DNA of 64,000 nt from Haliotis rufescens. Its lineage: Eukaryota. Where the stretch lies: positions 9,858,001 to 9,922,000 of the forward strand of contig NW_025963891.1 of assembly GCF_023055435.1 (NCBI RefSeq), given 5' to 3'. Below, in pieces: positions 7,534 to 61,226 of this stretch. Positions within the stretch are counted from its first letter, which is position 1. Each line of letters begins with the position of its first letter. Below the pieces are notes generated by a model. That model saw only the letters and a list, made by a program, of their open reading frames with translations. It searched no databases and was not told the DNA's origin. A program made the position numbers and the translations under genes.

Positions 7534-9781
7534 CTATATACACACCAGTTCCTGGCAGCCCTCGCTGAGCTTTCCACAGAACATGGTTTCGATCAGTTTA
7601 TTTACAGAGGCCTGTAAAAGAAAAGTTTTTTAACGACACGTAGTCATGATTTTATGACTGCATTACATCAACGTGTTCGATTTGTTAATTTAATTTAAAA
7701 CAAAATGGTACATGTTTATTTAGTTTGGGAAATAATGCAAATATGTCAGACCAACATTGGAGTGATTAAACCTTCTTAATATTTGTCACTCACAACATTG
7801 TCCATTTTCTTTTCTTTGATATCTTTTAGAAAGTTTTGGCAGTCCTTGCATCGCCCTCTCCCTTGAACCTACGGAAACATGAAATGACAAATTGTATGCA
7901 TCATTATGCCTACAAGTTTTAAACTTTCGTTTGTAACCAATGTAACAATAATATTGCAGCACAATAAGTGTGACGAATGGAGACCTCCCCTTTCTAACCA
8001 AGTACATTGTACAAATAATGTACACGTTAAGACATTCATTTGATTGTGTGTAAGTTTGATGAGTTATACTCACTAAACCTGTTGACTAGTGGACTAGGTA
8101 TTAATCTTGCCTTGTTTGTAGGTGTGTTCATGTTGATGGTATCAAGCGACGGACAGTTCTTGGTGGTTTTACAGATGGCTTTAGGGGTCTGCAGCTGTGA
8201 ATTGCTTACTCGCAGTGTACAATAATAATTATATAGTTAAAGGGGAAAATATAGTTCAGTTCTCAGCGTTTTGTGTAACTCAGTGAAAACAGGATAGAGG
8301 TTATTATTCTGATAAAGGAAATGTAAGCTAAAATGCTGAAAAAGAGGTATCCATCTCATTTCCCAGGTATCCAAATTCCATCTGATTGGTACATTCCTGA
8401 ACTTTTTGCATCAATCACCTTTTTCATGATGACAGTATATCCAAATGTAAGCTGACGAAATCTTGTGCTTCATGATTAGTCCATTGATTGGAGCAGGATT
8501 TCTGATGATGTGGAAGTTAACAGTTACCTGACTGTTGACTTTGTCTTTCTTCTCCAGGCATATTTTCTGCAATTTTGTCTTACACTGCAAATACGCGTTT
8601 TCACAATGTGAGCATCGAGAATACTAGGTTATCTAATTTACAGCGTTAAGGATCAACACAGTTTGCAATGAATATAGACCATTGCTCCTTTTTAATTATC
8701 TACCTTGTTAATACCATATCCTGTATAAAACATACATTCTCAACAAGGATATACAGGCAGTACTAGAGCGCTTAATGGTGATGAACAATGATAGTCGCTT
8801 GCCAAGGAAAATCAATATAATTACCTCAATTATCGGATGTGTGATATATTCAATACAATGCTCTTTGCAATAAAACATTTGATCTTGTTGTTTATGAAAT
8901 CCGTTTGTTTACTATTGAGAACTATTATTTATCTCACCTCTTCCACCTTGCTGGGTTCCATTGAAGAACAGACGTTGTTCATATTTGCTTCCTGTTCCTC
9001 CTGAAACACATGTTATATAAAAACCTCAGTACATTAGATCTGGAGAAGAGACATGAGTGTATTTGTGACATGTTTACATCCTTACTTTCAGGGGTAGACG
9101 TATCTTTAAATATATGGACAATCATGTAGTAATAGATTCATTCGTAGCAGATAGAATAGTGATAAATATATGAAAGTAGGGTTCAGTACATTATTATTCC
9201 TGGACAGATGCCATTTATTTTGGGAAATTGGAAAATTCAGATGTAGATTCCAAAAAGGAACACTTGGTTGACAGGTTCCATTACTTTATTTATTATATTC
9301 AGGGTAGGGGTATAAACCATCGTGTATAATTAAAAAGATAATGTTCTAAACATGTACGTATATGTAAGTGTGGACATTAAGAAATAACACGATTTTTACG
9401 AACCATCATGGGAAACAGTCAGTATTATTTACGTACAATCGATTCGAGTTCCATCTCCTGGCGATCAGTAATGAAAGCGATGCAATCAGCGCACTCATCA
9501 TTTCCATCCTGTATTGAAAGGGTCATAGCTGAAAATATGTAAATATAAAACGTCAACGCGTCAACTTTAGTCAAAAAATGATTTATGTAAATATGTTTAG
9601 ATTCGAACACATCAGAAAAAGAAGTAATGCATATAATTGGATATTTGTAAATATCATATTGCTGCGCCTTAGCCACGACCATCGTATCTACTGAGAAGTG
9701 GATAGTAAGAAGGCATGGCCATTTAAAACACTCACCCTGGCTTGCTACAACAGCGACAACAAATGCGAAAAAAGTCTTCAT
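7534..9781 (-). CDS. Copy A: 3'-truncated saposin-like gene (exons 1-7 only); may encode a 1.5-domain protein
   Basis: Exons 9781-9736, 9528-9437, 9000-8938, 8584-8528, 8188-8111, 7868-7794, 7611-7546, all in frame. TATA at 9833-9840. Homology to paralogous intron 7 ends at ~7240 and no exon 8 or 9 follows. Read-through into intron 7 gives VCI* ending at 7534. Confidence 0.65.
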
Positions 9782-10021
9782 TGTCCTTGAAGCTGAGAAA
9801 TTCAACTGTTGTGATGTGTTTAAATGTAAAGCTTTATATATGTTCCAATTCTTCATACATGATGACTTACATGTAATCAATTACATCTCACAGTAGAATA
9901 GCTCTAATTAACAGCAAACTAATTCAATTAGACGACTCAGACTGACAGATGTCCTGTTCTTAACGAATACACATGTTGAGACAATAATTCTCGCGTTCTT
10001 AATAAAATAACCTGTTTTTGA

Positions 10022-10183
10022 GTGATTGAGTATAGTTTTACGCCGCTTTTAGCAATATTCCAGCAATATCACGGCTGGGGACACCAGAAATGGGCTTTAC
10101 ACATTGTACCCATTTCGGGAATCGAACCCGGGTCTTCGGCGTGACGAGCGAACGCTTTTACAACTAGGCTACCCCACCGCCCC
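10022..10183 (-). mobile_element. tRNA-derived SINE (family 1)
   Basis: A/B boxes; TSD ACCTGTTTTTGA at 10010-10021 and 10184-10195; empty site in the G promoter region (~58225). Confidence 0.9.
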
Positions 10184-10279
10184 ACCTGTTTTTGATATCT
10201 CTCTTGATTAGACCTCTTTGCCACCTACTGTTGATCATGGTGAAACACACTACCATCACTTGATAGGATGAAAGAACTC

Positions 10280-17184: not shown

Positions 17185-18784
17185 CTAGTTGGCACCACAC
17201 ATACCAAGTCGGTTGCATGCCGTTTTAACATCCTGTAATAACAAATGTTCCATTCTTTTACATATGTTTCCAAAAAAAACCAGTCGTCTTTTAACTCTAA
17301 CTAGCCAGGTTTTATACTTCAGTCCGATCATACATATTGATAAGTGGCTTTAATGGATATCTGTAAAGAAATCGATATATATGCCTGTAAAGTGTAAGTT
17401 TATGTATGTATTATTACAATGAGTATCTCACTTATACATCCAACATTTACTTACCACCAAATCTAGTAGCTCGATTTCCATTTCGATTGCTGCATATAGA
17501 AAGTCAACACACTGAAACAGAGTACACAGAATGCTCAAACATAATTAGATGAATGTGAAATTGTATACATACACACATTATATAATGATATAAGAATATA
17601 TAGCATGACTGATTATGAAATTAACTGTAACACAATATGAGGGGCGACCTACGGGATCAGATGGTCAGGCTAGCTGACTTGCATGGTGCACGTCATTGTA
17701 TCCGATACTCATGGTGTCAAACACATGGATTGTCTAGGACTACAATAAGGAAAGAACTACTGAATTTATATCATAATCAGAAAACTGAACAATGATTGGA
17801 TAACTATATACACACCTGTTCCTGGCGGTCTTCGCTGAGCATTTCACAGAACATGGTTTCGATCATTTATTTACAGAGGCCTGTAAAAGAAAAGTTTTTA
17901 ACTACAAGTAGTCATGAATTTGTGATTGCATGGTACATATTTTATGTATTTTGGGAAATAATGCAAATATGCCAGACCAACATCGGAGTCATAAAAACAA
18001 TTTGTCATTCACAACATCGTCCATTATCCTTTCTTTGACGTCTTTGAGAAAGTTCTTGCAGTCCTTGCATCGCCCTCTCCCTTGAACCTACGGAAACATG
18101 AAATGACAAATTGAATGCATTATTATGCCTACAGGTTTTAGGCTTTCGTTTGTAACCAATGTAACAATAATGTTGCAGCCCAATAAGTGTGACGAATGGA
18201 GACCTCCTCTTTCTAACCCAGTAAATTGTACAAATCATGTACACGTTAAGACATTCATTTGATTGTGTATAAGGTTGATGAGTTGTGCTCACTATACCTG
18301 TTGACTAGTGGACTAGTACTAGGTATTAATCTTGCCTTGTTTGTAGGTGTGTTCATGTTGGCGGTATCAAGCGACGGACAGAACTTGGTGGCTTTACAGA
18401 TGGCTTCAGGACTCTGTGAAGGTGAACACAATTGCATGATATGTTGTAAAACCAAATCCTTTTACTTACTCGCAGTGTACAATAATAATTATAGAGTTAA
18501 AGGTAAAAACATAGTTCAGTTCTCATCGTTTTGTGTAACTCAGTGAAAACATGAAAACGGTTATTATTCTGATAAAGGAAATGTAAGCTGAAATGCTGAT
18601 ATAGAGTTTTCCATCTCTTTCCCCGGGTATCCAAACTCCATCTGATTGGTAAATCCCTGAACTTGTGCTTCATGATTAGTCCATTGATTGGAGCAGAATT
18701 TCTGATTATGGGAAAGTTATCAGTTACCTGACTGTTGACTTTGTCCCTCTTCTCCTGGCATATTTTCTGCACCTTTGTCTTACA
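17185..18784 (-). pseudogene. Copy B: saposin-like pseudogene (exons 4-9 only, frameshift and stop in exon 7)
   Basis: Exons 18784-18728, 18413-18336, 18087-18013, 17880-17816 (65 nt instead of 66; AAT AAA CTG ATC became AAT AAA TGA), 17511-17455, 17232-17185. Promoter and exons 1-3 are absent. Confidence 0.85.
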
Positions 18785-18933
18785 CTGCAAATGCGAGTAG
18801 GATATTTACAAATATCCAATTATATGCATTAATCAGGATTTCTTTTCTGATTTGTTCGAATGTAAACATATATACATTAATCATTTTTTCACTGAAGTTG
18901 GCGCGTTGACGTTTTATATTTACATATTTTCAG

Positions 18934-21582
18934 CTATGTCCATGTCGATACAGGATGGAAATGATGAGTGTGCTGATTGCATCGCTTTCATTACTGATCG
19001 CCAGGAGATGGAACTCGAATCGATTGTACGTAAATAATACCGACTATATCCCATGATAGTTCGTAAAAATCGTGTTATTCAAAATGTGCCCACTAACATA
19101 TACGTACATGTTTAGAACATTATCTTATTGATTATACACTAATGGTTTATACCCTTATCCTTAATATAATTCATCAAAATGGGATATGTTGTCAACCAAG
19201 TGTCATTTTGGAAATAATATGGCACCTGTCAAGTCCTTAGAGGAATAATGTACTGAGTAATGTACTATCTACCATAAATGAATCTCTTACTGAAGATATG
19301 TCCATATATTTATCAGTATTCTATCTACCACAAATTAATCTATTACAACATATGTGTACATATTTTAAAAGAAGCCTATCCATGAAATTACGAATGTAAA
19401 ATGTCACAAATACACTGCTTCTTTCTCTTCTCCAGATTTAATGTACTGAGTTTTTAAACATTTCTTTCAGGATGAACAGGAAGCAAAAATGAACAATATC
19501 TGTTCCACAATGGAACCCAGCCAGGTGGAAGAGGTGAGAAAAATAATAGTTCTCAATAGTAGAAAAACGGATTTCATAAACAAGAAGATCAGACATGTCA
19601 TTGCAAAGAGGAATGTATTAAATATATCACACATCTGATAATTGAGGTAATAATTTTGATTATCTTTTGCAAACAATTATCACTGCTCAGCGTTCTAGAA
19701 CTGCCTGTATATTCTTGTTTAGAATGCATACATCCTAATATCGGAGGTGGTTTTAACAAGGTAGATAATTAAAAAGGAACAATAATCTCTATTCATTGTA
19801 AATTGTCACCTTTAAAATCTTAACGCCGTGATCATAGATAATCTTGTATTATCGAGGCTAACATTGTGAAAACGCGTATTTGCAGTGTAAGACAAAAGTG
19901 CAGAAAATATGCCAGAAGAAGAAGGACAAAGTCAACAGTCAGGTAACAGTTAACTTTTACATCATCAGAAATCCTTCTCCAATCAATGGACTACTCACGA
20001 ATCGAAGATTGCGTCAGCTTACATTTGCATATACTGACATCATGAAAAAGGCGATTGATGCAAAAAGTTCAGGGATGTACCAATCAGATGGAATTTGCAT
20101 ACCCAGGGAAGGAGATATATCTCACTATCAGCATTTCAGCTTACATTTCCTTTATCAGAATAATAACCTTTATCATGTATACACTGATTTACACAAAACG
20201 CTGAGAACTGAAATTTGTTTTCCCCTGCAACTCTGTTATTATAATTGTAAACTGCGAGTAAGTAAAAGGATTGGGTTTTACAACATATCATGCAAATGTG
20301 TTCACCTTCACAGAGTCCTGAAGCCATCTGTAAAGCCACCAAGTACTGTCCGTCGCTTGATACCGCCAACATGAACACACCCACAAACAAGGCAAGAATA
20401 ATACCTAGTACTAGTCCAGTAGTCAACAGGTTTAGTGAGTATAACTCATCAAACTTACACACAATCAAATGAATGTCTTAACGGAGGTCTTCATTCGTCA
20501 CACTTATTGTGCTACAATATTATTGTTACATTTGTTACAAACGAAAGCCTAAAAAACGTAGGCATAATGATACATTCAATTTGTCATTTCATGTTTCCGT
20601 AGGTTCAAGGGAGAGGGCGATGCAAGGACTGCAAGAACTTTCTCAAAGACGTCAAAGAAAGGCAAATGGACACTGTTGTGAGTGACAAATATTGAGAAGG
20701 TTTATCACTCCTATGTCGGTCTGGCATATTTGCATTTTTTCCCAAACTACATAAACATGTACCATCTTGTTTTAAGTTAAATTAACAAATCGTACACGTT
20801 GATGTTATGCAATTATAAAATCATGACTACTTTTAGTTAAAAGCTTTCCTGTTACAGGCCTCTGTAAATAAACTGATTGAAACCATGTTTGTTGAAAAGC
20901 TCAGCGAAGACCGCAAGGAACTGGTGTGTATATAGCTATCCAATACTTTTTCAGTTTTCTGTTTTTGATATAAATTCAGTAGTTCCATTCTAATTGTTTT
21001 TTAACGCCGCACTCTGCAATATGTTAGCTACTTTACTGCAGTCTGAAAATAATCGATTCTGGACCAGACAATCCAGTGATGGACATCATGAGTGTCGGAG
21101 ACAATGACGTGCACCATCCAAGTCAGCGAGCCTGACCATCTGATACCGTTAGTCGTCTCTCATATCTTGCAGTTAATTTCATAATGAGTCATCATATATA
21201 TTCTTATATCATTATATAATGTGTGTATGTTTATACTTTCAAACTCATCTAATTGTTTTTGAGCATTCTATGTACTCTGCTTCAGTGTGCTGACTTTCTA
21301 GATGCAGCAATCGAAATGGAAATCCAGCTGATAGATTTGGTAGTAAGTAAATGTTGGATGAATAAATGAGATACTCATTGTTTTAATACATGCATAAACT
21401 TACACTTTACAGCCATAGATATACCAAATAAGGACAATTATCAATATGTATAAATAACTGGATAGTTAGAGATAAAAGACTGATGTTTATTTAATTAAAC
21501 ATAAGTAAAAGAATGAAACATTTTTTTATTACAGGATGTTAAAACGTCATGCAATCGACTTGGTATGTGTGGTGCCAACTAG
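18934..21582 (+). pseudogene. Copy C: saposin-like probable pseudogene (exons 2-9, no promoter or signal-peptide exon)
   Basis: Exons 18934-19025, 19471-19533, 19886-19942, 20314-20391, 20603-20677, 20858-20923, 21286-21342, 21535-21582, in frame. Cys3 of domain 2 is replaced by Val (TTC TGT -> TTT GTT), and the poly(A) signal reads AATAAC at 22203. Confidence 0.8.
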
Positions 21583-23847
21583 TTGTAAGGTGAGTTGTTT
21601 TGAACGTGATATGGGCGAGGTAAGGTGAAGTGAGGCAAAATGAGTTTTATCATCGCGTTCAAGATTATTGTACTCATATAGCGATGTACACGCACGTGTA
21701 TATGGCAGCTTGTACTGGTCCGGACTTTATAGTCATGTCGAGTGCCAGGCAGACTAACAACAGGTACCATATTTTAAGGTCTTTTGGAATGTCACGGCCG
21801 GGGATCGAACAAAACGATCTGCCGCTCCCCGGGTAGATGCTCTATCCACTACAACACGGAGGTTCTACTTCTGCCTATGTGGCAGTTACACCACTGTCTG
21901 AGAAACATTTTTAGGTTGGAACTATATTGAATGGTTGTTTATTTACTGTAACGCTGCAATCAGCAATACTCCAACTTTATGACAGCCTGTCAAAAATCGA
22001 GTCTGGTCCAGACAAGCCAGGGATCCATATTGTAAGAACCGATCCACGCCGTCGGGGTACGATGACACGCATCAATCGACTGTTATTACATTATTAAACA
22101 AGACACGGTTAACTTCATCTTGAACTTTCGGCATTGCAGATGCTGACTATGCTGCCTCTCGATCCTTTATCGCACGGACAACGTCACATGTAAACCAGGG
22201 TCAATAACACTTTGCATTTAACTAGAGTACTGTTGTTGCTTAGACGGTTTATGTGCGATATGGAGATCATGTGTGGAACGTTTCAAGAAACTGTGTCATA
22301 TTATAGGCACGTGACAATTATTTAGCAAGGGAATCTTCGTGCAACGCCTGTTTTCACACCATACATAACATAGTCTCTCGACAGTCAAGAACGCAAAGAT
22401 CGATTTGTATAAATTGGTCCAAGTTGGTCAGCTGATGATCAAATGAAACTACTTGAACATGCATGTCTATTATCATTCGATTTTGAGGATAGCGGGGTGT
22501 GTTAGGTTTAACGCCTCCTTAAACAGTACTCCAGTTATATCACGTCGTGTCACCTTAATGTGGGAGGAAAGCCCAAAGTGATTCAGTTTTGAGATGTTAA
22601 CCACTTTGTCGAAATCCATGACCACAGGTATGGTGCCGATAAACCTAAAAACATAATCGGCGCGAACTGGGACCCGAACCCACAATCATACGTTTCTGGC
22701 GTGCCAAAGGGACGCAGCTCTGCACAGCGAATAGCGGCGCCGTAGACGACTGGGTGAAATGTTGCTAAAGGCGACTTACCGGCAAGGGTCTTCAGGCTCA
22801 GTGACATTGGTTGATTGAGTATCATCGTAAACCGATCCTTGCTCACAACACCAATCATTGGATTGTCTGGTCCGAACTCGATTATATCCAGTTCGACATT
22901 AAACAACAAACAAACACACTTCTCCTCGAAGCAAAGTTCTTTACGAAATATAGTGAAATATAGTAAAATATAGTGAATATACATGGACATTATTATACGA
23001 GAATGTGTGTCAAGCTGAGTTTACGAAATGAATGTCAGATATTTTGTATTTCCCGCGAGAAATCAGTGTGACACACATGTGAGTGTCATTATTTCTTTAT
23101 TACACATTATTTCCTAATCCTTTCAGCTTCTCTTTAGAAAAATGCACTGATCACCACACAATTTGTGGAATGACGTCAACAATCTTTAGCTATGACGTCG
23201 TTTCTAGTGTGACGCAATTCCGATCTTACGTCATAATAAGATTCGTCAACAATGTCGTCCGTATGACGGAAACTATACACTGCTGCGCGAGAAGGGATAT
23301 TTGCACTAGTTCACATACGGTTTTAATGTTGGTAGGTTGGTTTGTTGTTTAACGCCGCACACAGCAATATTCCAGCTATAAGACAGCGGTCTGTAAATAA
23401 TCGAGTCTGGACCAGACACTCCAGTGATTAATATCATGAACATCGATCAACGCAATTGGGATGGATGACATGCATCAACCAAGTCAGCGAGCCTGACCAC
23501 CTGATCACCTGATCGCCTGGATCTTCACAGGTCCACGGTTTTAATGAACTCGTTTATTTCTAACCCTATTGGTAATAAATGACTGGATACTCGAGATATG
23601 ATGTAAATGAGATTGCGGTTGTAGCGGTTTTGGCATCATATACTTATCAGTACTTCGATCATTGTTAGAAATACTGGCCAAGTTAGTCACTCACCATCAA
23701 AGTATTATAATTGAATGACAGCGACACAAATGCACCAGCATGATGATATCAGTATACCCTCAAGAACGAACACATATCTTAACACTTGACGTACTTGTCC
23801 CTTGCCGTGTGGCGTGTGTATAGCAGGATGCTAATGGACCTTACATA

Positions 23848-25250
23848 TACTCAACAACAAAAGTTCCTGTGACACCAATATTTTAGTGTATTTTTCAAAC
23901 AAGTTAAGTTTGGTTTTCAATATTGTAGTACATGTATGGAATCAAGTCACAAAAATGCAACTGCTACAGAAAAGCATGCATTCCATGCAAAAGTTGACTT
24001 TTATGCAAGCCCCATGCATTTCACTACCAAAGAATTGGCATAAAAACATGTGCGTTAACGGGATTCCATATGCATTGTTTAGCATCGTGCTGACAACAAC
24101 CACTCCGAAAAACAACAAAATTACGCAATTATTCAACATTACGAAATGCCACGCCTGTCCGAAAATGAGCGTCTGCGAGCCATTGGTTACTTGAAGCAGG
24201 ATCGAGTCAACGTGATGTTGCAAGACAATTTAACGTCCACAGAAACACCATTTGGTGTTTATGGCAACGTTGGCAACAGACGAATGCAGTCAGAGACCAT
24301 CCTCGGAGTGGCAGGCCACGCGTAACCAATAAACGACAAGACAACTGGATTCGACCAACACACCTACGTAATCGATTCCAGCCAGCAAAAGTGACTGCAA
24401 GAAGCATCCCTGGCCTTCGACGAATATCTTCACAAACCGTACGTCGTTGTCTCAGATGTGCAGGGATTGTCGCCAGAAGACCCGCCAGACGTTCCATTTT
24501 GAGGGGACAAGTACCATTCACTGACGAGTCTCGTTTTCCCCTCAGCCACAGCGATGGACGGATTCGAATGTACCGACGTCGAGGTGAACGTTACGTCAAT
24601 AATTGTGTCATGGAAGAAGATCGGTTCGGGGGCGGCATGATATGGGTTGGGATTACAGCAAGACAGATGACCCGTTTGATAGTGGTAGAGGGAAATCTCA
24701 ATGGACAGCGCTACCGCGACGAGATCATCGGCCCTGTTGTTCTATCGTTTTTGCGTCGTCATGACCCAGGCATTACCTTTAAACATGACAACGCCCGGCC
24801 TCATATTGCTCGACTTGTTCAGGATTCCCTTCAACAAAACAACGTGAATGTCATCCCCTGGCCGGCTCGCTCCCCAGACCTCTCACTAATCGGGCACATG
24901 TGGGCTGAGATGGATCGGCGCCTTCGACGTCAACCACGTGTTCCACAGACACTCCAGGAACTTCGAAACATGCTCCAGCAGATATGGACAGATATCCCAC
25001 AGGACTTTGTGCGACGCCTGGTCCATTCCATGAGACGAAGATGTGTTGCTTGCATTGCAACCAGAGGTGGACACACACGCTATTGATTTGTAAATTGACA
25101 TTTTGGCATGTTCATGGTTTTTTTATGAAATCAGTATGGCAAATTAAACCATTTGAACACTTACGGGAGTCTTTTTTCTGTTGCAAACCGAAATGTTTCA
25201 GATTTGGTACATAACTTATTCAATGTTACAGGAACTTTTGTTGTTCAGTA
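23848..25250 (+). mobile_element. Tc1/mariner DNA transposon, full length but inactive
   Basis: 27-bp TIRs (TACTCAACAACAAAAGTTCCTGTGACA at 23848-23874; 25224-25250, 2 mismatches) with flanking TA. Transposase runs from ATG 24146 (frameshifted) to 25086 with FTDES, HDNARPH and WPARSPDL; the catalytic E is replaced by G (LIGHMW). Confidence 0.92.
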
Positions 25251-28032: not shown

Positions 28033-30132
28033 TAAGATATGTGTTCGTTCTTTAGGGTATACTGAAATCATCATGCTGGTGCACTTGTGTCGCTGTCATT
28101 GAATTATAATACTTTGATGGTGAGTGACTAACTTGGCCAGTATTTCTAACAATGATCGAAGTACTGATAAGTATATGATGACAAAACCGTTGCAACCGCA
28201 ATCTCATTTAAACCATATCTCGAGTATCCAGTCATTTATTACCAATAGGGTTAGAAATAAACGAGTTCATTAAAACCGTGGACCCGTGAAGATCCAGGCG
28301 ACTAACGGGATCCGGTGGTCAGGCTTGCTGACTTGGTTGATGCATGTCAAATATCCCTTCTCGCGCACCAGTGTATAGTTTCCGTCATACGGACGACATT
28401 GTTGACGAATCTTTGTATGACGTAAGATCGGAATGGCGTCACACTAGAAACGACGTCATAGCTAAAAATTGTTGACGTCATTCCACAAATTTTGTGGTGA
28501 TCAGTGCATTTTTCTAAAGAGGAGCTGAAAAGGATAAGGAAATAATGGGTAATAAAGAAATAATGACACTCACATGTGTGTCATACTGATTTCTCGCGGG
28601 AAATACAAAATATCTGACACTCATTTCGTAAACTCAGCTTGACACACATGCTCGTATGTAAATGTCCACGTATATTCACTATATTTCGTAAAGAACTTTG
28701 CTTCGAGGAGAAGTGTGTTAGTTTGTTGTTTAATGTCGAACTGGATATAATCGAGTTCGGACCAGACAATCCAATAATTGGTGTTGTGAGCAAGGATCGG
28801 TGTACGATGACCCTCAATCAACCAATGTCACTGAGCCTGAAGACCTTGCCGGTAAGTCGCCTTGAGCAACATATAGCCCAGTCGTCTAAGGCGCTGCTAT
28901 TCGCTGTGCAGAGCTGCGTCCCCTTGGCACGCCAGAAACGTATGATTGTGGGTTCGGGTCCCAGTTCGCGCCGATTATGTTTCTAGGTTTATCGGCACCA
29001 TACCTGTGGTCATGGATTTCGACAAAGTAGTTAACATCTCAGAACTTTGGGCTTTCCTCCCACATTAAGGTAACACGACGTGATATAACTGGAGTACTGT
29101 TTAAAGAGGCGTTAACCCAAACACACCCATCCTATCCTCAAAATCGAAATATAATAGAAATTCATGTTCAAGTAGTTTCATTTGATCATCAGCTGACTAA
29201 CTTGGACCAATTTATATAAATCGATCTTTGCATTCTTAACTGTCGAGAGTCTATGTTGTGTATGGTGTGAAAACAGGCGTTGCACGAGAATTCCCTTGCT
29301 AAATAATTGTCACGTACCTATAATATGACACAGGTTCTTGCAAAGTTCCACACATGGTCTCCATATCGCACATAAACCGGCTAAGCAACAACAGTACTCT
29401 GGTTAAATGAAAAGTTTTATTGACCATGGTTTACATGTGACGTTGTCCGTGGGCGATGAAGGATCGAGAGGCAGCATAGTCAGCATCTGCAATGCCGAAA
29501 GTTCAAGATGAAGTTAACCGTGTCTTGTTTAATAATGTTATTACAGTCGATTGATTGCGTGTCATCGTACCCCGACGGCGTGGATCGTTTCTTACAATAT
29601 GGATCTCTGGCTTGTCTGGACCAGACTCGATTTTTGACAGGCTGTCATAAAGTTGGAGTATTGCTGATTGCAGCGTTACAGTAAATAAACAACCATTCAA
29701 TATAGTTCCAACATTAAAACGTTTCTCAGACAGTGGTGTAACTGCCACATAGGCAGAAGTAGAACCTCCCTGTTGTAGTGGATAGAGCATCTGCCCGGGG
29801 AGCGGCAGGTCGTTTTGTTCGATCCCCGGCCGTGACATTCCAAAAAGACCTTAAAATATGGTACTTGTTGAAGGGGATAAAACAAGCACTGGCCGGCTCG
29901 GTGTCTGAGTATAATGTGTCTGAGTGAATTTCCATTGCGAAACGGCGACATAGTATCTCAGTGAGCTGGCAGTCTGGCACTTTAACGTCCGGATCAGTAC
30001 AAGGTAGGTGCCACATACACGTGCATGTATATCGCTATAAAACTGCAATAATCTTGAAAGCGATGTTAAAACTCATTTTGCCTCACCTCACCTCAACCCG
30101 CCCATATCATGTTTAAAAAACTCACCTTACAA

Positions 30133-44183: not shown

Positions 44184-45476
44184 CAGTATGAATCATAATT
44201 ATTGAGAATTGAAAAATCTTTAAAATTGTAAATATGAATATTTCCCCCGATAAAATATAACATATTTTAAGTGAGCACAAACCTTCTTTAATCACAGTAA
44301 CATCAATATTTTATCAGACCTCCATTTGCTCCCTAACTCAGTTTTATACGATTGGGCATACTCCCTATGAGAGAGGTTAGAGTCTCATGGGTGAGAGAGT
44401 CCCAAAATCGCACCACCTCGCGCTTCATATCATCAACTTTTGTCAATCCCTTTTGGTTCACCGACTCCTTCATGAGTCCCCATAAATTTTCTATAGGATT
44501 TAAGTCCGGGCTGTAGCTGGGCCAGTCCGAAACGGTCACATTGTTTTCCACAAACCACTGCCGCGCATGTCTTGCGGTGTGTTTGGGGTCATTATCCTGT
44601 TGCAAAATCCATATATTTCCATTAAAAAAAACATCTGCATTTGGGATCAGGTGAGCTCTCAAAATGTCTCTATGCCTTTCACTGGTTAAATTAACCTCAA
44701 AGACACACATTGCCGTCGTCCCAAGTGAAGATATCCCTCCCCAAACATGAAACTTCGGACTGTCCTTTGGTCTCTGGTACAATGGAACGGAATGACATTT
44801 TGTCCACATTTTAACATTGTTAGGATACACCCATACAGAGCTCTCATCTGTGAAAATAACACTGTTCCACTCAAAGATTTCATGCGCCAAACACTACTCT
44901 ACACGTCTATCCTTGTGTTCTTGTTTCAAGAGCGAAGAGGCAATTCCTTTCTTTTTCCCATTCAAGTTCAATCAGATGTCTTCTTACTGTAGATTTGGAT
45001 ACATTTACTGTCCCTCTATTTACCATTTAATGTTGGATATTTGAGATACTCTCCCTTCTGTTTTTAGAAGCCAAAATACCCAGTCTCACACGATCACCAA
45101 ACACCAGTTTTCGAGGTCTCCCCGCTCCTTTTCTGTGCTCAATTCCTGAACGATTCTCAATATTCTTCTTAACTCTATACACTGTAGAAAGAGGAGTATC
45201 TGTGCTCTTTGCTAATGTAGCAGCATCAGTGATGCCTTCATCATGGAGCTGTAGAATCAACCTTCTTTTCTCCTCTGCATTCATTTCTGACATATATCAG
45301 GAAAAGTCGTCTGCTCCATAATCAAGGGAGATAACTCTAATTTGCAACTTCTAAAATTGAAGCGGAGTTGCTTCCCTTTGACTATACCCCAATTTTAAAC
45401 AAGTTTCAATATTGATATTTTGTGTATGCTTCCTTGAATATGACATTAAAATTCAAAATAATTTTGAACCAGACTA
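44184..45476 (-). mobile_element. Tc1 (DD34E) DNA transposon, inactive
   Basis: HTH ORF 45293-45027 and catalytic ORF 44890-44333 (FTDES, QQDNDPKH, 34 residues between D and the E of SPDLNPIE). Degenerate TIRs, TA duplication at 44182-44183 and 45477-45478. The paralogous empty site with a single TA is at ~12866. Confidence 0.9.
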
Positions 45477-48446: not shown

Positions 48447-51214
48447 ATGAAGACCCTTTTCGCATTTGTTGTCGCTGTTGTAGCAAGCCAGGGTGAGTGT
48501 TTTAAATGGCCATGCCTTCTTACTATCCACTTCTCAGCAGATACGATGGTCGTGGCTAAGGCGCAGCAATATCATATTTACAGATATCCAATTATATGCA
48601 TTCAGTCTTTTTCTTATGTGTTCGAATGTAAACATATTTACATTAATCATTTTTTGACTAATGTTGAGGCGTTGACGTTTTATATTTACATATTTTCAGC
48701 TATGGCCCTGTCGATACAGGATGGAAATGATGAGTGCGCTGATTGCATCACTTTCATTACTGATCGCCAGGAGATGGAACTCGAATCGATTGTACGTAAA
48801 TAATACCGACTATAACCCATGATTGTTCGTAAAAATCGTGCTATTTCCAAACGTGCCCACTAACATATACGTACATGTTTAGAACACTATCTTTTTGATT
48901 ATACACTAATGGTTTATACCCCTACCCTCAACATAATACTTAAAGTAATGGGACCAGTCAACCAAGTGTTCGTTTCGGAATCTACATCTGAATTTTCCAA
49001 TTTCCCAAAATAAATGGGATCTGTCCAGTCTTTGGTAGAATATTGTACTGAACCCTACTCTCATATATTTATCACTATTCTATCTACTACAAATGGATCT
49101 ATTACTACATATATTTAAAGATAAGTTTACCCCAGAACGTAAGGAGGTAAACATGTCACAAATACACTCATGTCTCTTCTCCAGATCTATTGTACTGAGT
49201 TTTTATATAACATGTGTTTCAGGAAGAACAGGAAGCAAAAATGAACAACGTCTGTTCTTCAATGGAACCCAGCAAGGTGGAAGAGGTGAGATAAATAATA
49301 GTTCTCAATAGTAAACAAACGGATTTCATAAACAACAAGATCAGATGTTTCATTGCAAAGAGCAATGTACTGAATATATCACAAGGTAGATAATTAAAAA
49401 GGTACAATAATCTATATTCATAGCAAACTGTGTTGATCCTTAACGCTGTGAATTAGATAAACTAATATTCTTGAAGTTAATATTATAAAAACGCGTATTT
49501 GCAGTGTAAGACAAAAGTGCAGAAAATATGCCAGAAGAAGAAGGACAAAGTCAACAGTCAGGTAACTGTTAATTTTTACATCATCCGAAATCCTGCTCCA
49601 ATCAATGGACTTATCATGAAGCACAAGATTGCGTCAGCTTACACTTGCATATACTGACATCATGAAAAAGGTGATTGATGCAAAAAGTTCAGGAATGTAC
49701 CAATCAGATGGAATTTAGATACCCGGGGAAGGAGATGAAAAACTCTATATCAGCATTTCAGCTTACATTTCCTTTATCAGAATTATAACCTTTACCATGT
49801 TTTCACTGAGTTACACAAAATGCTGAGGATTGGACTATGATTTTACCCTTTAACTCTTTAATTATTATTGTACACTGCAAGTAAGCAAAAGGATTTGGTT
49901 TTACAACATATCATGTAATTGTGTTCACCTTCACAGAGCCCTGAAGCCATCTGTAAAGCCACCAAGTACTGCCCGTCGCTTGATACCGCCAACATGAACA
50001 CACCTACAAACAAGGCAAGATTAATACCTAGTACCAGTCCTCTAGTCAACAGGTTTAGTGAGTATAACTCATCAAACTTACACACAATCAAATGAATGTC
50101 TTAACGTGTTCATGATTTGTACAATTTACTGGGTTAGAAAGTAGGTTCTACTTTCGTCACACTTATTGTGCTGCAATATTATTGTTACATTGGTTACAAA
50201 CGAAAGTTTAAAAACTGTAGGCATAATGATGCATTCAATTTGTCATTTCATGTTTCGTAGGTCCAAGGGAGACGGCGATGCAAGGACTGCAAGAACTTTC
50301 TAAAAGACGTCAAAGAAAGGCAAATGGTCACTGTTGTGAGTGACAAATATTGAGAAGGTTTAATCACTCCTATGTTGGTCTGGCACATTTACATTATTTC
50401 CCAAACTACATAAAACATGTACCATCTTGTTTTAAGTAAAATAACTAATCGTACACGTTGATGTAATGCAATCATAACATCATGACAACGTGTAGTTAAA
50501 AACGTTTCTTTTACAGGCCTCTGTAAAGGAACTGATCGAAACCATGTTCTGTGAAAAGCTCAGCGAAGACCGCCAGGAACAGGTGTGTATATAGTTATCC
50601 AATCATTGTTCAGTTTTCTGATTATGATATAAATTCAGTAGTTCTTTCCTTATTGTAGTCCTAGACAATCCATGTGTTTGACACCATGAGTATCGGATAC
50701 AATGACGTGCACCATTCAAGTCAGCTAGCCTGACCATCTGATCCCGTAGGTCGCCCCTCATATTGTGTTACAGTTAATTTCATAATCAGTCATGATACAT
50801 ATTCTTATTTCATTATATAATGTGTGTATGTATACAATTTCACGTTCATCTAATTATGTTTGAGCATTCTGTGTACTCTGTTTCAGTGTGCTTACTTTCT
50901 AGATGCAGCAATCGAAATCGAAATCGAGCTACTAGATTTGGTGGTAAGTAAATGTTGGATGTATAAGTGAGATACTCATTGTTTTGATATTTACATAAAC
51001 TTACACTTTACAGCCATATATGTCGATTTCTTAAGACATATCCATTAAGGACACTTATCAATATGTATGATCGGAATGAAGTATAAAACCTGGATCGTAA
51101 GAGTTAAAAGACTACTGTTTATTTAATTAAAACTATGTAAAAGAATGGAACTTTTTTTTATTACAGAATGTTAAAACGTCATGCAAACTACTTGGTATGT
51201 GTGGTGCCAACTAG
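48447..51214 (+). CDS. Copy F: secreted two-domain saposin-like protein, intact
   Basis: Exons 48447-48492, 48700-48791, 49223-49285, 49505-49561, 49937-50014, 50261-50335, 50517-50582, 50887-50943, 51167-51214. Frame open throughout, all 13 Cys kept, splice sites conserved, TATA at 48393. Confidence 0.9.
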
Positions 51215-53960
51215 TTGTAAGGTGAGTTGTATTGAACGTGATATAGGCGAGGTAAGGTGACGTGAGGCGGGATGAGTTTTAACATCGCGTTCAAGATTAT
51301 TGCACTCCATGTGGCGGCTTGTTCTCGTCCGGACTTTATAGTGCTTGCTCACTGAGATGCCATGTCGCAGTTTCACATAGAAACCCCACTCTGACACATT
51401 ATACTCAGACACCGAGCCGGCCAGTGCTTGTTGATGGTTGATGTTGCGCTAAAGCACACACGGATGCTTTTGAACATTGCTACTCTCCTTTTACAAATTG
51501 AAATTATATACTGTTTCGTGTTGATTCCCAAATTGTAATAGTATGTTAATCCAGAAGTCTGAACGTAAAAGAACTTCGTGTGAAACCAACAAACAACCAG
51601 CATGTTGTATACAATCAACAAATGAATTACAAAAATTAACTGGGTTTACAAATCAGGACAAATTACTCCACATTAATTACAATGGCGCCTCGGGCAGACG
51701 CCCTGTCCAATACACCACGGAGGTTTTCCTTCTGTCTACGCAATAGTTACACCGCTGTCTGAGGAACAAGTTTCGGTTGGAACTATTGACTGTTTGTTTC
51801 GTTTACTTCAACGCCACAATCAGCACTATTCCAGCTATATGAAGGCCTGTCTGAACCAGACACGCAATCAGCCAAATTACCGAGTCTGGCCACTCGACCC
51901 ATTAAGTCGCCTCTAACGACCAGCATAGGTTGATTGGGAGAAATACTTACTCTGGACCAACTGTCTTCTGCTCCCCGGACGGATGCTCTGTCCACTCTAC
52001 TGATGACTAGTCATGATATGAAATATTCTTACATTATTACACATGACACGGTTAACTTCAGTGTGTATTTTTGGTATTGCAGATGCTGACAATGCTGCCT
52101 CTCGATCCTTCAGCGCACACGAACAACGTCACGTGTAAAACATTGTCAATAAAACTTTGCATTTGACCAGAGTACTGTTGTTGCTTGGACGGTTTATTTG
52201 AGATATGGAGATCATTTGTTGAACCTGTGTCATATAATAGGCACGTGAAAATTATTTAGCAATCGAATCCTAGTGGAACGCCATTTATCACACCATACAT
52301 AACATAGACTCTCCACAGTCAAGAACGCAAAGAAATTGGTCCAGGCTGGTCAACTGATGATCAAATGAAACTACTTTAACACGTTTTTCTATTATCGTTC
52401 TATTTTGAGGATAGAGGAAATGAGTTGGGTTTGGTTTGTCCAAGGAACGGAACTCTGCACGGCGAATAGCGGCGCCTCAGACGACTGAACCAATCGCATC
52501 CTCATCCTTGAGGATAGACCATTATGCGGTGAACTAAATACTCAGAACCAGACATTATACGATTAAATGAGGAGACACATGTATACAGGATCAAGACAAA
52601 TGGACATAATAAGTTGTCACCAGTTAATTCCTGAAACAAATTGAAATAAAACGGTTATTGGCAAATGAACCCATTACGATTACTATTTTCAACAGATATC
52701 CTAAGAAAATAAACAGAACGAAGCTATCGCGTGTACAGCAAAGAGTGAGTGAGTTTAGGTTAACGCCTCTTTGAACAGTACGTCAGTTTCATCAGCACTC
52801 GTGATGGGTGCTATAATGCTATGTCACACATGGGTGCTCTTGAATATTAATACTCTCTTTTGATTAATTGAAATTATATTCACTGCTCCACGGCTCAGTC
52901 ATATATATCCGCTTCACCCACGGGCACTTTACCGGGGATCATGGTACATGTGACGGGTAATCGTGACCTAGTGTCGCACGGGATATGATGTGGTAGTGCA
53001 TGGTTGCCTAGCATTGGACAATAAGTGAAGGAAACATTACATTCCTTAGAACTATTATCAGATGGATACCAGACCTATCCTTCATTTGAATGGTTAAAGC
53101 TTCACCAACGTTACAAACTTTTAACTCAGAACTTATCAACTTGAAATATTTGAATAAACTTTAATTTTAAAGTCTCTGCAATGAGCATGACCTTTCACGG
53201 GGCACAAAGTGCTCTTGTCTCACAAGGTAAGAGATTCAGTCTAACTAGTGGTCTGGTGACTCTCTTGGAACATCTCCTTTCAGTCTCTTCACATTCCTGC
53301 TGTAGTACAGTAGGTCTGGTATTCATCTCGTCAGGCACTGATAATGATGTACTCGTAGTGTCTTGATGGTCATCTGGCTTCCACTGCTCAGTTGTCTTGT
53401 TGCTGGACATTACTGAATCTCACTTACAGTCACGGTATCTGCCGTCCTAGTAGTTTCCTCCCACATATGAGTGAGTGAGGAATGAGTATGGTTTTACGCC
53501 ACTTCTACATTGCAACAATATCACGAAAGGGACACCGGAACATGGGCTTCATGCATTGTACTCAGGTGGGAATAAAACCCGGGTGTTTGCCGTGACGAAC
53601 TAACACTTTTACAACTAGGCTACCTCATCGTCCCTGTGATGTGCAGTACTACAGTATATTTGTTTTGTTTATATTTAATTCACTTACTTTATTTGAATGT
53701 TCATCTGGAATATAATTATATATTAATCATAAAATATCGTAAAATATCACTGACATTAAATGTTTGGAGAATTGACATTACCTGAAGTTGATGTCATAAT
53801 GCGTTATCACCCAAATAGATGTTATCCCACACCAGGGTGGTGAACACATTGCCGCGAAATCCATAGGGAACATCGGTTTCATGCTGTAATTTTGTTTTGT
53901 CGTCAAAGCCGTATCAAGAGTCACCGAGTAGGAAACGCCGTGTCCTAACGAGTTGAGTAG
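48870..53960 (+). repeat. Near-identical direct repeat of ~58865-64000 (period ~10 kb)
   Basis: Introns and intergenic DNA match almost base for base; paired ORFs in the track are identical (49093/59104, 49418/59429, 53195/63238). Confidence 0.9.
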
Positions 53961-54339: not shown

Positions 54340-56430
54340 ATTTTGTGACCTAGATCAGAAGATGTTTTGGACTTTAAATCGACGTGGGAACCAATTGCAT
54401 GCCTTGAAGCAGAAGGTGTGCAAACAAGAAATGCCCAAGAAATCTGTACCATAATGCCAAACCATATGAAACAGGTATCAAGCGACCAAGATGAGCTTCA
54501 CTTTGATCAAGAGGTTAGGAAGCACATTGAGGGACACGTGGAAAGGATACGTTTGGACATACAGGGCACTGACCAGTCATCAGTTGATCTTCTAACAAGT
54601 CCAGGGGAAAAAAAAAAAATTTGCAAAACCCCAAAACGCAAACAAGGCTGCTGGTATGGACAACATGTTTTTTGAACATCTTTGATATGGTGGAAAATAC
54701 CTTACAAAGTGCTTGTCAGAACACTTTAACCTCGTTATTACATCTGGATACATTCCTGCCCAATGGAAAAGAGGCACTATCATACCGATATTCAAAGGAG
54801 GCAACATGTCTCGCGTGTTACCGGATTCCTATCGAGGGGTAACCCTATTGCCGGTTATATACAAGGTATTTGAAGTCATTGTAAGTAGTAGAATCCAACA
54901 GCTCACCAACAGTGAATCCTTTCCATGTATACAACAACGTGGTTTCTAGAAAGGCCTTTCCTCCAGTGACACCTCCTTAATTGTACAAGAATCAATACTT
55001 CATAAAGAACGATCGGACGCCATCAACTTAGCCTTCTTAGACAGTTCAAAAGCGTTTGACGCAGTATGACACCAAGGACTTTTATACAAGCTGTATCATC
55101 TTGGAATCCCAGATGCACTGTGGGGGATATTTGACAATAGATACAAGTTCATCGAGAGCAGCGTCCTTGTTAATAACACAAGATCATACTGGTTTCCGTT
55201 ATCAAGAGGTGTTCGGCAAGGAAGCGTCCTGTCGGCAAAACTCTACCTGCTATACATAGATGAACTGTGAGAGAAACTGTCCACCAGCAAACTTGGTGCA
55301 GTGATCTTGGATATCCATGTAATGGCACCCACTCAAGCGGACGATATAGCAATTGTTAGTCCAGTATCAGCAAATCTGCAGAAGATGATGACCATATGTG
55401 AAAGATATGGTTCAGACTGGCGGTTCTCTTTTTATCTCCTTCCAAGAGCCAGATAGTCAGATATAGTGACAGAAAAGCAGCTGCTTCTAGTGTTGTACTC
55501 TATGGACGTGATATCCCAGTGACAATTGAGCTTAAGCACGTTGGTTATATTGAACACTGAATTTAACTCATGGTAGAGAACTCTGGAGAGCTGCTCAAAG
55601 ATGAAAGCATCAGCCATGACTTTTCAACATCAGGAAACTATTCTTTCTTGGCCACCTCTGTAATTGTTCTAATCATCTGCTTTCTAAGAAGGTTTTTATG
55701 ACTCGTATCTCCATGTATATACATAAGTGTTCATTCACAAGTATGGGCTTTGTCCCAGACAAATGTCGCATCCTCCACAAGTATTCATTATACTGTCACC
55801 TGGAGGCATTTCTTAGTTCCAGTACATCCCTGGAGCGGAAGATATGGAAAAGGACAGTCAAAGAAGCCGTGAATACTTTTGAAGTACCAGCATGTCGGGA
55901 AAGACTTTCATCAGAAACTGACACTGTGCACTTTGAGAGTATTCACACGTGGCGAGGAGGATAGCTCGAGAGTGTCCTGAGCTAAAGTCAGCTGCCTGTT
56001 TTGCTGTCAACATTTGTGCGATGTGGAGACCGGGGAAATTACATGGTATCTGTTCACAGTGTAGTATTAACTACCATGACTTACTGACTCACGTACGGTG
56101 CCACTGTGTGAGTAAGAGAACAATAAGAGAGAACTTATGGTGTGACATTGTGTGTATAGGTCCCGTTGACATCAGCGTTGAACTCCACAACAAATCAGGT
56201 TATGTTTGCTGTCCTGTAAGCCACCTTTGGATACTGATCCAGATACCAGTGGCTCTTACTCACGAAGTGAAATTCGAGGACTATACCGCTTTCATTATAT
56301 GGACGGAATTTACTAACAAAATACGTTACCACAGTGGTATATGGTGGTATACTCTGACAATGTAATAATTTTCATGTACTTATCTTTAATATTATACCTT
56401 GTAACTCTCCTATTGAGGAATAAAAGTGTA
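54340..56430 (+). mobile_element. 5'-truncated LINE (CR1/L2-group-like), degraded RT
   Basis: PAQWKRGTIIPIFKG, YRGVTLLPVIYKVFE, QQRGF, LDSSKAFDAV, GVRQGSVLS, QADD; many stops and frameshifts; ends near AATAAA at ~56418. Absent from the paralogous units. Confidence 0.85.
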
Positions 56431-57872: not shown

Positions 57873-58038
57873 GAGTGAGTGAGAGAGTGGGTGAATTTGG
57901 TTTTACGCCGCTTTTAGCAATATTCAAGCAATATCACGGCGGGGGACACCAGAAATGGACTTCATCCATGTGAAGAATGGAACCCGGGTCTTCGGCGTGA
58001 CGAGCGAACGCTTTATCAACTAGGCTACCTCACCGCCC
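57873..58038 (-). mobile_element. tRNA-derived SINE (family 1) upstream of copy G
   Basis: Same position and flanks as the copy upstream of F. Confidence 0.88.
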
Positions 58039-58472
58039 AACTGACTCTTGTAGCATTGGCAATGTCAGATAATTGACATAGTTTAGTAATCATGTAGATG
58101 CAAAACAAATTCAGTCAGCTGTTGACTAGTTACGACTCTTGAGTTCTTTCATCATGTCAATTGATTGTAGGGTGTATCACCATGGTCAACAGTAGGTGGC
58201 AAAGAGATCTAATCGAGAGAGATATCAAAAACAGGTTATTTTATTAAGAACGCGACAATTATTGTCTCAACATGTGTAGGTTTCAAACAGAGAATATTCG
58301 TTAAGAACAGGACATCTGTCTGAATCGTCTAGTTGAATTAGTTTGCTGTTAATTAAAGCCATCCTACTGTGCGCTGTGATTGACTAAGTCACCAACTATG
58401 AAGAATCGGAACATATATAAAGCTTTACATTTAAACACATCACAACAGTTGAATTTCTCAGCTTCAAGGACA

Positions 58473-61226
58473 ATGAAGACTTTTTTCGCATTTGTAGTCG
58501 CTGTTGTAGCAAGTCAAGGTGAGTGTTTTAAATGGCCATGCCTTCTTACTATCCACTTCTCAGTAGATACGATGGTCGTGGCTAAGGCGCAGCAATATGA
58601 TATTTACGGAAATCCAATTATATGCATTAATTCTTTTTCTGATGTGTTCGAATCTAAACATATTTACATTAATTATTTTTTGACTAAAGTTGACGCGTTG
58701 ACGTTTTATATTTACATGTTTTCAGCTATGGCCCTGTCGATACAGGATGGAAATGATGAGTGCGCTGATTGCATCGCTTTCATTACTGATCGCCAGGAGA
58801 TGGAACTCGAATCGATTGTACGTAAATAATACCGACTATAACCCATGATGGTTCGTAAAAATCGTACCCACTAACATATACGTACATGTTTAGAACATTA
58901 TCTTTTTGATTATACACTAATGGTTTATACCCCTAACCTCAACATAATACTTAAAGTAATGGGACCAGTCAACCAAGTGTTCGTTTCGGAATCTACATCT
59001 GAATTTTCCAATTTCCCAAAATAAATGGGATCTGTCCAGTCTTTGGTAGAATATTGTACTGAACCCTACTCTCATATATTTATCACTATTCTATCTACTA
59101 CAAATGGATCTATTACTACATATATTTAAAGATAAGTTTACCCCAGAACGTAAGGAGGTAAACATGTCACAAATACACTCATGTCTCTTCTCCAGATCTA
59201 TTGTACTGAGTTTTTATATAACATGTGTTTCAGGAAGAACAGGAAGCAAAAATGAACAACGTCTGTTCTTCAATGGAACCCAGCAAGGTGGAAGAGGTGA
59301 GATAAATAATAGTTCTCAATAGTAAACAAACGGATTTCATAAACAACAAGATCAGATGTTTCATTGCAAAGAGCAATGTACTGAATATATCACAAGGTAG
59401 ATAATTAAAAAGGTACAATAATCTATATTCATAGCAAACTGTGTTGATCCTTAACGCTGTGAATTAGATAAACTAATATTCTTGAAGTTAATATTATAAA
59501 AACGCGTATTTGCAGTGTAAGACAAAAGTGCAGAAAATATGCCAGAAGAAGAAGGACAAAGTCAACAGTCAGGTAACTGTTAATTTTTACATCATCAGAA
59601 ATCCTGCTCCAATCAATGGACTTATCATGAAGCACAAGATTGCGTCAGCTTACATTTGCATATACTGACATCATGAAAAAGGTGATTGATGCAAAAAGTT
59701 CAGGAAAGTACCAATCAGATGGAATTTAGATACCCGGGGAAGGAGATGGAAAACTCTATATCAGCATTTCAGCTTACATTTCCTTTATCAGAATAATAAC
59801 CTTTACCATGATTTCACTGAGTTACACAAAATGCTGAGAATTGGACTATGATTTTACCCTTTAACTCTATAATTATTATTGTACACTGCGAGTAAGCAAA
59901 AGGATTTGGTTTTACAACATATCATGTAATTGTGTTCACCTTCATAGAGCCCTGAAGCCATCTGCAAAGCCACCAAGTACTGCCCGTCGCTTGATACCGC
60001 CAACATGAACACACCTACAAACAAGGCAAGATTAATACCTAGTACCAGTCCTCTAGTCAACAGGTTTAGTGAGTATAACTCATCAAACTTACACACAATC
60101 AAATGAATGTCTTAACGTGTTCATGATTTGTACAATTTACTGGGTTCGAAAGTAGGTTCGTCTTTCGTCACACTTATTGTGCTGCAATATTATTGTTACA
60201 TTGGTTACAATCTAAAGTTTAAAAACTGTAGGCATAATGATGCATTCAATTTGTCATTTCATGTTTCGTAGGTTCAAGGGAGACGGCGATGCAAGGACTG
60301 CAAGAACTTTCTAAAAGACGTCAAAGAAAGGCAAATGGTCACTGTTGTGAGTGACAAATATTGAGAAGGTTTAATCACTCCTATGTTGGTCTGGCACATT
60401 TACATTATTTCCCAAACTACATAAAACATGTACCATCTTGTTTTAAGTAAAATAACTAATCGTACACGTTGATGTAATGCAATCATAACATCATGACAAC
60501 GTGTAGTTAAAAACGTTTCTTTTACAGGCCTCTGTAAAGGAACTGATCGAAACCATGTTCTGTGAAAAGCTCAGCGAAGACCGCCAGGAACAGGTGTGTA
60601 TATAGTTATCCAATCATTGTTCAGTTTTCTGATTATGATATAAATTCAGTAGTTCTTTCCTTATTATAGTCCTAGACAATCCATGTGTTTGACACCATGA
60701 ATATCGGATACAATGACGTGCACCATTCAAGTCAGCTAGCCTGACCATCTGATCCCGTAGGTCGCCCCTCATATTGTGTTACAGGTAATTTCATAATCAG
60801 TCATGATACATATTCTTATTTCATTATATAATGTGTGTATGTATACAATTTCACGTTCATCTTATTATGTTTGAGCATTCTGTGTACTCTGTTTCAGTGT
60901 GCTGACTTTCTAGATGCAGCAATCGAAATCGAAATCGAGCTACTAGATTTGGTGGTAAGTAAATGTTGGATGTATAAGTGAGATACTCATTGTTTTGATA
61001 TCTACATAAACTTACACTTTACAGCTATATATGTCGATTTCTTAAGACATATCCATTAAGGACACTTATCAATATGTATGATCGGAATGAAGTATAAAAC
61101 CTGGATAGTAAGAGTTAAAAGACTACTGTTTATTTAATTAAAACTATGTAAAAGAATGGAACTTTTTGTTTATTACAGAATGTTAAAACGTCATGCAAAC
61201 TACTTGGTATGTGTGGTGCCAACTAG
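58473..61226 (+). CDS. Copy G: secreted two-domain saposin-like protein, intact
   Basis: Exons 58473-58518, 58726-58817, 59234-59296, 59516-59572, 59948-60025, 60272-60346, 60528-60593, 60898-60954, 61179-61226. Differs from F at 3 aa by hand count. TATA at 58414. Confidence 0.9.

Follow-up and report, generated by a model that had tools for sequence, protein, structure and literature searches.

In Dictyostelium, the proteins AplE and AplK consist of a signal peptide and two SapB domains and are processed into antimicrobial peptides (PMC11542183), and multi-peptide precursors of nematodes and Naegleria are cited in the same paper. Tandem saposin-like folds are also described for the 'bicycle' gall effectors of aphids, among which g2703 has a long central helix (preprint PMC13041983). 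Here we report an array of short-exon genes in the abalone Haliotis rufescens, seven copies of which lie in a stretch of 64,000 nucleotides (nt) of the 22.5-Mb scaffold C113 (C113:9858001-9922000, referred to as the window; all coordinates are window positions unless another name is given). The sequence evidence supports reading the encoded protein as a diverged saposin-like protein (SAPLIP) with two domains. The array is an annotated but uncharacterised, Haliotis-restricted expansion of a known superfamily, and neither a hidden locus nor a new kind of gene.

Self-comparison of the window revealed one gene unit which recurs seven times, in both orientations (copies A to G), with nine exons (e1-e9) of 46, 92, 63, 57, 78, 75, 66, 57 and 48 nt. 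Splicing e1 to e9 of copy E (38101-40879, plus strand), which is intact, gives a continuous frame of 193 amino acids (aa). Exon 1 (38101-38146, 46 nt) holds the ATG and a hydrophobic, signal-peptide-like start, while exon 2 (38344-38435, 92 nt) encodes the end of the predicted signal peptide and then helix 1 of domain 1, with Cys28 and Cys31. Domain 1 continues through exon 3 (38858-38920, 63 nt; Cys57) and exon 4 (39188-39244, 57 nt), at which Cys68 comes first, to exon 5 (39605-39682, 78 nt), which carries Cys92, Cys98 and the linker. Helix 1 of domain 2, with Cys119 and Cys122, is on exon 6 (39929-40003, 75 nt), and is followed by exon 7 (40185-40250, 66 nt; Cys149), exon 8 (40553-40609, 57 nt), which begins with Cys160, and exon 9 (40832-40879, 48 nt including the stop), with Cys184 and Cys190.

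All copy E introns end in a polypyrimidine-AG acceptor and begin with a GT donor, except intron 5, which is of the GC-AG type. The GC donor has a good GC-donor context and is kept in 12 of the 12 copies of the whole array, whose extent is described below. Another donor of exon 5, a GT after 39655 that would lead to a 184-aa product, was rejected, as five copies (A, B, C, F and G) do not have it. We adopted the GC donor after 39682 because it is the only in-frame donor kept in every copy, and it yields the 193-aa protein and agrees with RefSeq. The exon joins were assessed by translation, cysteine counts and comparison of the copies, and full-length searches were run with database proteins, among which P0026 is the product of copy E.

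Translation of copy E places the cysteines of domain 1 at 28/31/57/68/92/98 and those of domain 2 at 119/122/149/160/184/190, exactly as an earlier note, made from the letters of this DNA alone, had listed them; a thirteenth cysteine, Cys76, is present in domain 1, on exon 4. Both domains, of about 80 aa each, satisfy the SAPLIP pattern C-x2-C...C-x10-C...C-x5-C within some 80 residues. The 12 framework cysteines are present in all complete copies and are invariant or nearly so across the Haliotis sequences. Position 76, on the other hand, differs between species: every copy of H. rufescens and H. cracherodii has Cys there, H. rubra has Ser, and of the H. asinina proteins one has Cys and another Ser. 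Each domain is encoded by four phase-0 exons, and the lengths of e3 to e8 are all multiples of three. In the alignment of the two domains, the three introns within domain 1 coincide in position with the three within domain 2, and the exon lengths agree with this; the protein thus arose by duplication of a unit of four exons, each encoding about one helix.

The N-terminal segment that precedes the two homologous domains is of the signal type: residues 1-16 are hydrophobic (grand average of hydropathy, GRAVY, 1.59) and a small-x-small motif stands at their end. The mature protein is acidic and hydrophilic, with a net charge of -5 to -8, an isoelectric point (pI) of about 5 and a GRAVY of -0.55. 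Charge is sorted by exon; e2 and e3 are acidic, e4 has a net charge of +6, e6 is basic (+4 to +5), and e7 and e8 are again acidic, e8 being hydrophobic as well. The signal-type start, the cysteine spacing and the profile matches given next support the earlier claim of a secreted-type protein with two saposin-like, six-cysteine domains.

To trace relatives, exon 2 (exactly 30 aa) was aligned across eight copies and the resulting profile was compared with 1.84 billion representative proteins. P0009 of H. cracherodii, 193 aa long, was the best match; the profile aligned with its residues 17-46, the position of exon 2 in the nine-exon model. Outside Haliotis, this profile matched only multi-SapB proteins, among them P0013, which has 22-27 Pfam SapB domains (expectation value, E, 1.6e-6), and the SapB protein P0014 (E 1e-4). 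When the family profile was compared with all chain sequences of the PDB, the sole match was human saposin B (E 0.0015), with which domain 2 aligns from end to end, over saposin B residues 6-80, with six of six cysteines in register. With hhalign, the family profile matched P0014 with E 8.7e-5 and a probability of 60%. All these profile scores for saposin kinship (saposin B, P0013 and P0014) are modest. In the ESM Atlas, the ten clusters closest to the whole protein were all SapB, with a top score of 0.91, and domain 1 alone reached 0.84, which we take as a lead only. A phase-0 intron directly before the fourth cysteine (Cys4) of the domain is common to the array genes and to a canonical multi-SapB gene of the same genome (C13:27726281-27747674), which encodes at least ten SapB domains. 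A local hhalign comparison gave P 0.003 and was counted as little. Judged on its sequence, domain 2 has a well-supported saposin kinship, while that of domain 1 follows mainly from its homology to domain 2 and from the shared cysteine frame. Two other candidate groups were set aside: the MANF and canopy-type saposin-like proteins, which gave no matches of note, and abalone lysin and sp18, which are not known to have a cysteine framework.

The AlphaFold model of P0026 is all-helical, with a mean predicted local distance difference test score (pLDDT) of 52.6 and domain 1 better modelled than domain 2, and that of the H. asinina protein P0010 is also all-helical, with a mean pLDDT of 70 and a long central helix that links two units. 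With both models, Foldseek placed saposins B, C, A and D and surfactant protein B (SP-B) at or near the top, none with an E better than 0.2. The best VIA match was saposin A (Z 8.4, 75 residues aligned), which scored no higher than generic helical hairpins.

Several of these results weigh against reading the array product as a membrane-active SAPLIP. Confidence in the AlphaFold models is low to middling, and no Foldseek or VIA match to either of them is significant or clear of generic helical hairpins. Pfam SapB_1 and SapB_2 had no match in the window in a six-frame search of the 1.33-Gb genome and none in the full proteins P0009, P0029 and P0030, and a Pfam search of the single exons, with E up to 10 allowed, was empty. 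Acidity and hydrophilicity of the mature protein, together with a domain 1 that is without an obvious hydrophobic core, set it apart from NK-lysin-type lytic peptides, and a literature search gave no paper on the array family. Half-domain hidden Markov models built from the canonical SapB exons of the genome were also weak, since for three of the four halves about 4 of 2000 shuffled sequences scored at least as high, and the N-terminal half of domain 1 scored no better than shuffles.

Comparison with RefSeq showed that the genes are already held there. Copy E is identical to P0026 (XP_046350243.2), copy F to P0027 (XP_048256786.1) and copy D to P0029, and, past the window, copies I, J and L are identical to P0023, P0016 and P0017, respectively; copy G is one residue off P0023. 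These exact matches mean that the public annotation already contains the genes with the same junctions, the GC donor included. The 90% cluster of P0009 has 18 members, at which those of H. rufescens are named 'proactivator polypeptide-like 1' and those of H. cracherodii, about ten paralogues, 'prosaposin-like' or 'uncharacterized protein'. Two statements of the earlier note thus fail: the cluster was called hidden, whereas copies E and F stand in RefSeq letter for letter, and it was said not to be a recognised named gene, whereas RefSeq uses the names above. What it proposed about a lineage-specific, recently amplified family under birth-and-death evolution agrees, as far as sequence comparison goes, with what we found: a word-indexed search with P0026 turned up relatives in four Haliotis species and nowhere else (H. 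rufescens, H. cracherodii, H. asinina and H. rubra), the last three have genes of the same architecture, copies F-K are young, and the protein tree fits turnover.

Some annotated models depart from the nine-exon gene. The RefSeq model P0015 (263 aa, LOC124131215) joins e1-e8 of copy F to 52068-52145 and 55764-55961 (plus strand) in place of e9, and either reflects an alternative 3′ end or is wrongly joined. Two further models, P0010 and P0011, come from H. asinina; one is without exon 5, in frame, and the other has extra units resembling e3, e6, e7 and e8. The inner exons, as symmetric phase-0 cassettes, allow such loss and gain, and the two models are either real isoforms or annotation slips.

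Exon 2 had 11 near-identical matches on C113, between 9867437 and 9973744. Together with copy B, which is without exon 2, this gives an array of 12 copies that spans about 110 kb. The seven copies counted in the earlier note are those of the window, and five more (H to L) follow it. No further copy was found within 10 kb before the window or within 10 kb after copy L. Copies H, I, J and L are intact, and copy K (L020:2885 to L022:6622) is intact in its coding exons; its intron 8 measures 7,737 nt, against about 220 nt elsewhere, presumably by an insertion.

Within the window, self-comparison and the matching RefSeq models confirmed nine short exons of 46-92 nt as the unit of all seven copies, all nine being present in D to G and fewer in A, B and C. 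Copy F (48447-51214, plus strand) is intact, with e1 at 48447-48492, e2 at 48700-48791, e3 at 49223-49285, e4 at 49505-49561, e5 at 49937-50014, e6 at 50261-50335, e7 at 50517-50582, e8 at 50887-50943 and e9 at 51167-51214. Copy G (58473-61226, plus strand) is intact as well (e1 58473-58518, e2 58726-58817, e3 59234-59296, e4 59516-59572, e5 59948-60025, e6 60272-60346, e7 60528-60593, e8 60898-60954, e9 61179-61226). The tally of three intact (E, F and G) and four altered copies (A to D) given earlier was reproduced, in keeping with tandem amplification accompanied by damaged copies.

Copy A (7546-9781, minus strand) has e1 at 9736-9781, e2 at 9437-9528, e3 at 8938-9000, e4 at 8528-8584, e5 at 8111-8188, e6 at 7794-7868 and e7 at 7546-7611. 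It is truncated at its 3′ end, where e8 and e9 are absent and the homology of the unit stops near 7241, and the start of the cluster had been set at 7534, which is 12 nt outside its last exon. Copy B (17185-18784, minus strand) is without e1-e3 and retains e4 (18728-18784), e5 (18336-18413), e6 (18013-18087), e7 (17816-17880), e8 (17455-17511) and e9 (17185-17232); its e7 has 65 nt instead of 66, which leads to a frameshift and then a stop. Copy C (18934-21582, plus strand) is without e1 and has Val in place of Cys149; its exons are e2 18934-19025, e3 19471-19533, e4 19886-19942, e5 20314-20391, e6 20603-20677, e7 20858-20923, e8 21286-21342 and e9 21535-21582. In copy D (30133-33147, minus strand), all nine exons (e1 33102-33147, e2 32819-32910, e3 32309-32371, e4 31902-31958, e5 31512-31589, e6 31212-31286, e7 30967-31032, e8 30373-30429, e9 30133-30180) and the whole 193-aa open reading frame (ORF) are present, but the acceptor of e7 is CG rather than AG, and RefSeq still models this copy. 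An assembly gap of Ns (30591-30790) lies between e7 and e8 of copy D; because it is within intron 7, it affects no reading frame, and its flanks follow one another, strand included, as they do in intron 7 elsewhere in the array; continuity across it is likely.

The copies fall into two parts. Copies E-L are arranged in tandem, with a period of about 10 kb for E, F and G, while A (minus), B (minus), C (plus) and D (minus) form a rearranged, inverted part at which B and C are joined head-to-head at about 18798-18802. An inverted repeat (21131-23303 and 28348-30585, 90-93% identical) places C and D tail-to-tail around a transposon-rich centre. At least two inversions have affected this older part of the array. 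Transposase remnants occur in the spacers between copies at 24391-25083 (plus), 25681-26193 (plus) and 44336-44890 (minus), two of them of DDE_3 (Tc1/mariner type) and one of DDE_Tnp_4. The adjacent units at 52940-53957 and 62983-64000 are 99.8% identical over 1 kb, which reflects either a very recent duplication or an assembly copy number in need of checking.

The truncated end of copy A adjoins an intronless Ras-family ORF of 231 aa (6359-7051, minus strand), which is 97% identical to the H. cracherodii 'ras-related protein Rap-2a-like'. Just past copy L there is a different saposin-like gene (C113:9982634-9983625, or L023:5634-6625; minus strand), which resembles the N-terminal, canonical SapB part of the H. 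asinina 'prosaposin-like' protein P0012; the C-terminus of P0012 is domain 1 of the array family. A canonical prosaposin-like gene is located about 300 kb downstream of the array on the same scaffold (C113:10211710-10236021).

Divergence among the copies bears on whether the array is functional at all. It could be mostly a decaying or unexpressed product of duplication, with gene models that are merely ab initio predictions, as truncation or damage affects four of the seven copies in the window and transposase remnants lie between copies. We regard this as highly improbable. In each of the eight copies E-L the ORF is complete and every splice signal, even the unusual GC donor, is in place, and the architecture is maintained in H. 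cracherodii, H. asinina and H. rubra. The ratio of nonsynonymous to synonymous differences per site (pN/pS) is 0.08-0.63 among the intact copies, and copy E has diverged from the others by 4% in its exons against 9% in its introns, about half as much; both point to purifying selection on the coding sequence. Copies F-K differ by 0.5-2%, in exons and introns alike, and are very young. The protein tree places copy D together with two H. cracherodii proteins (support 91/90), which indicates at least two lineages older than the split of H. rufescens and H. cracherodii, while copies F-J form an unresolved set of H. rufescens only. The tree, the truncated copies and the transposase remnants together fit birth-and-death turnover with recent tandem gain.

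As to function, we consider it fairly probable that the array product is a secreted, lipid- or membrane-active effector of defence or digestion, encoded by an array of diverged two-domain SAPLIP genes. We favour this by analogy with the two-domain precursors of Dictyostelium (PMC11542183) and on account of the amplified dosage. The protein would be secreted, and each domain would form a disulphide-stapled helical bundle with the pairs C1-C6, C2-C5 and C3-C4, as in saposins. Domain 2, with its hydrophobic third helix, may be the lipid- or membrane-binding module. Domain 1 would be a very polar, degenerate partner with an acidic first half, a lysine-rich third helix of charge +6 and the unpaired Cys76; perhaps it modulates domain 2, binds charged surfaces or forms a covalent dimer. 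Action would be extracellular or in the gut lumen, at amplified dosage, possibly with an acidic pH optimum, as for the two-domain precursors known from amoebae and nematodes. The acidic, polar character of the protein argues against a cationic lytic peptide of the NK-lysin type.

According to the main rival, the protein is a cofactor of the sphingolipid-activator type that presents glycolipids or other lipids to hydrolases in lysosomes or in the digestive gland and attacks no membrane. Its pI of about 5 resembles that of saposins, the only solved relative found by sequence is saposin B, and the automatic RefSeq names are prosaposin-like. However, the protein has just two domains and no SapA match (it is not prosaposin, as the earlier note had also held), the canonical prosaposin-like gene some 300 kb away could fill the housekeeping role, and a Haliotis-restricted, twelve-fold tandem amplification would be unusual for a housekeeping cofactor. 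We regard such a cofactor as rather unlikely.

A genus-restricted, multi-copy family with turnover of its copies would also suit a reproductive, gamete-surface or mucus protein, with egg coats, sperm membranes or mucus as its target in place of microbes. A gene annotated as SapB1, which may belong to another family, is strongly sex-biased in the gonads of H. discus hannai (PMC11989308); it carries the Pfam SapB_1 label, which the array family does not get. Moreover, rapid adaptive change is typical of abalone gamete proteins, and the pN/pS values here, all below 1, show none of it. A reproductive role appears very unlikely to us. A bolder proposal, which we hold to be quite unlikely though less so than the reproductive one, is that of a Haliotis innovation on the saposin scaffold. 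It would combine frame-safe cassettes of one helix per exon, as the H. asinina models suggest, with a charge-segregated, non-lipid domain 1 that dimerises via the free cysteine, and would serve a new extracellular function, for instance in gamete interaction, in mucus or as an antimicrobial switched by pH.

With this array, the saposin-like superfamily gains an unstudied branch, confined to one genus and expanded in tandem, in farmed and endangered molluscs whose innate defences are poorly known. If membrane-active, its products would be candidate immune or digestive effectors, and the genes would also be a neat case of domain duplication with one exon per helix. The locus further illustrates that a short-exon gene can be recovered by reading raw sequence, here one that the public annotation already has.

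Of the known systems, saposin B and the SapB domains of SAPLIPs (SapB_1, PF05184; SapB_2, PF03489) resemble the array protein, which shares with them the spacings 3, 26-27, 11, 24 and 6, a predicted all-helical fold and an acidic pI. It differs in being too diverged for the Pfam models, in the high polarity and the seventh cysteine of domain 1, and in having each helix on its own short exon. As in prosaposin, several SapB-type domains would be contained in one secreted precursor, with secretion predicted here, but prosaposin has SapA ends and at least four SapB domains, against two domains and no SapA match in the array protein. The lytic single-domain SAPLIPs (NK-lysin, granulysin, amoebapores and caenopores), whose mature peptide is one amphipathic saposin domain, cationic in NK-lysin and granulysin, are unlike the two-domain, acidic array protein with its pI of about 5. 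SP-B has the saposin fold, a seventh, unpaired cysteine in the region of the third helix and a strongly cationic stretch, the last two of which recall domain 1 of the array protein. The seventh cysteine of SP-B forms dimers. On the other hand, SP-B is very hydrophobic and is made as a three-domain precursor, whereas the lysine-rich helix of the array protein is hydrophilic and Cys76 is not universal, being Ser in H. rubra.

The aphid bicycle effectors (PMC13041983) resemble the array family in being secreted (predicted here), lineage-restricted and multi-copy, with two saposin-like units, and a long central helix like that of g2703 links the units in the H. asinina model. Bicycle proteins are without an amphipathic, lipid-binding character and act on plants, and the likeness is one of description. 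With AplE and AplK of Dictyostelium (PMC11542183), the kinship shown is at the level of the superfamily and the likeness is one of layout, the link to defence belonging to the known systems; that layout comprises a signal peptide (predicted here), two SapB-type domains and a linker, and is found in multigene families in both.

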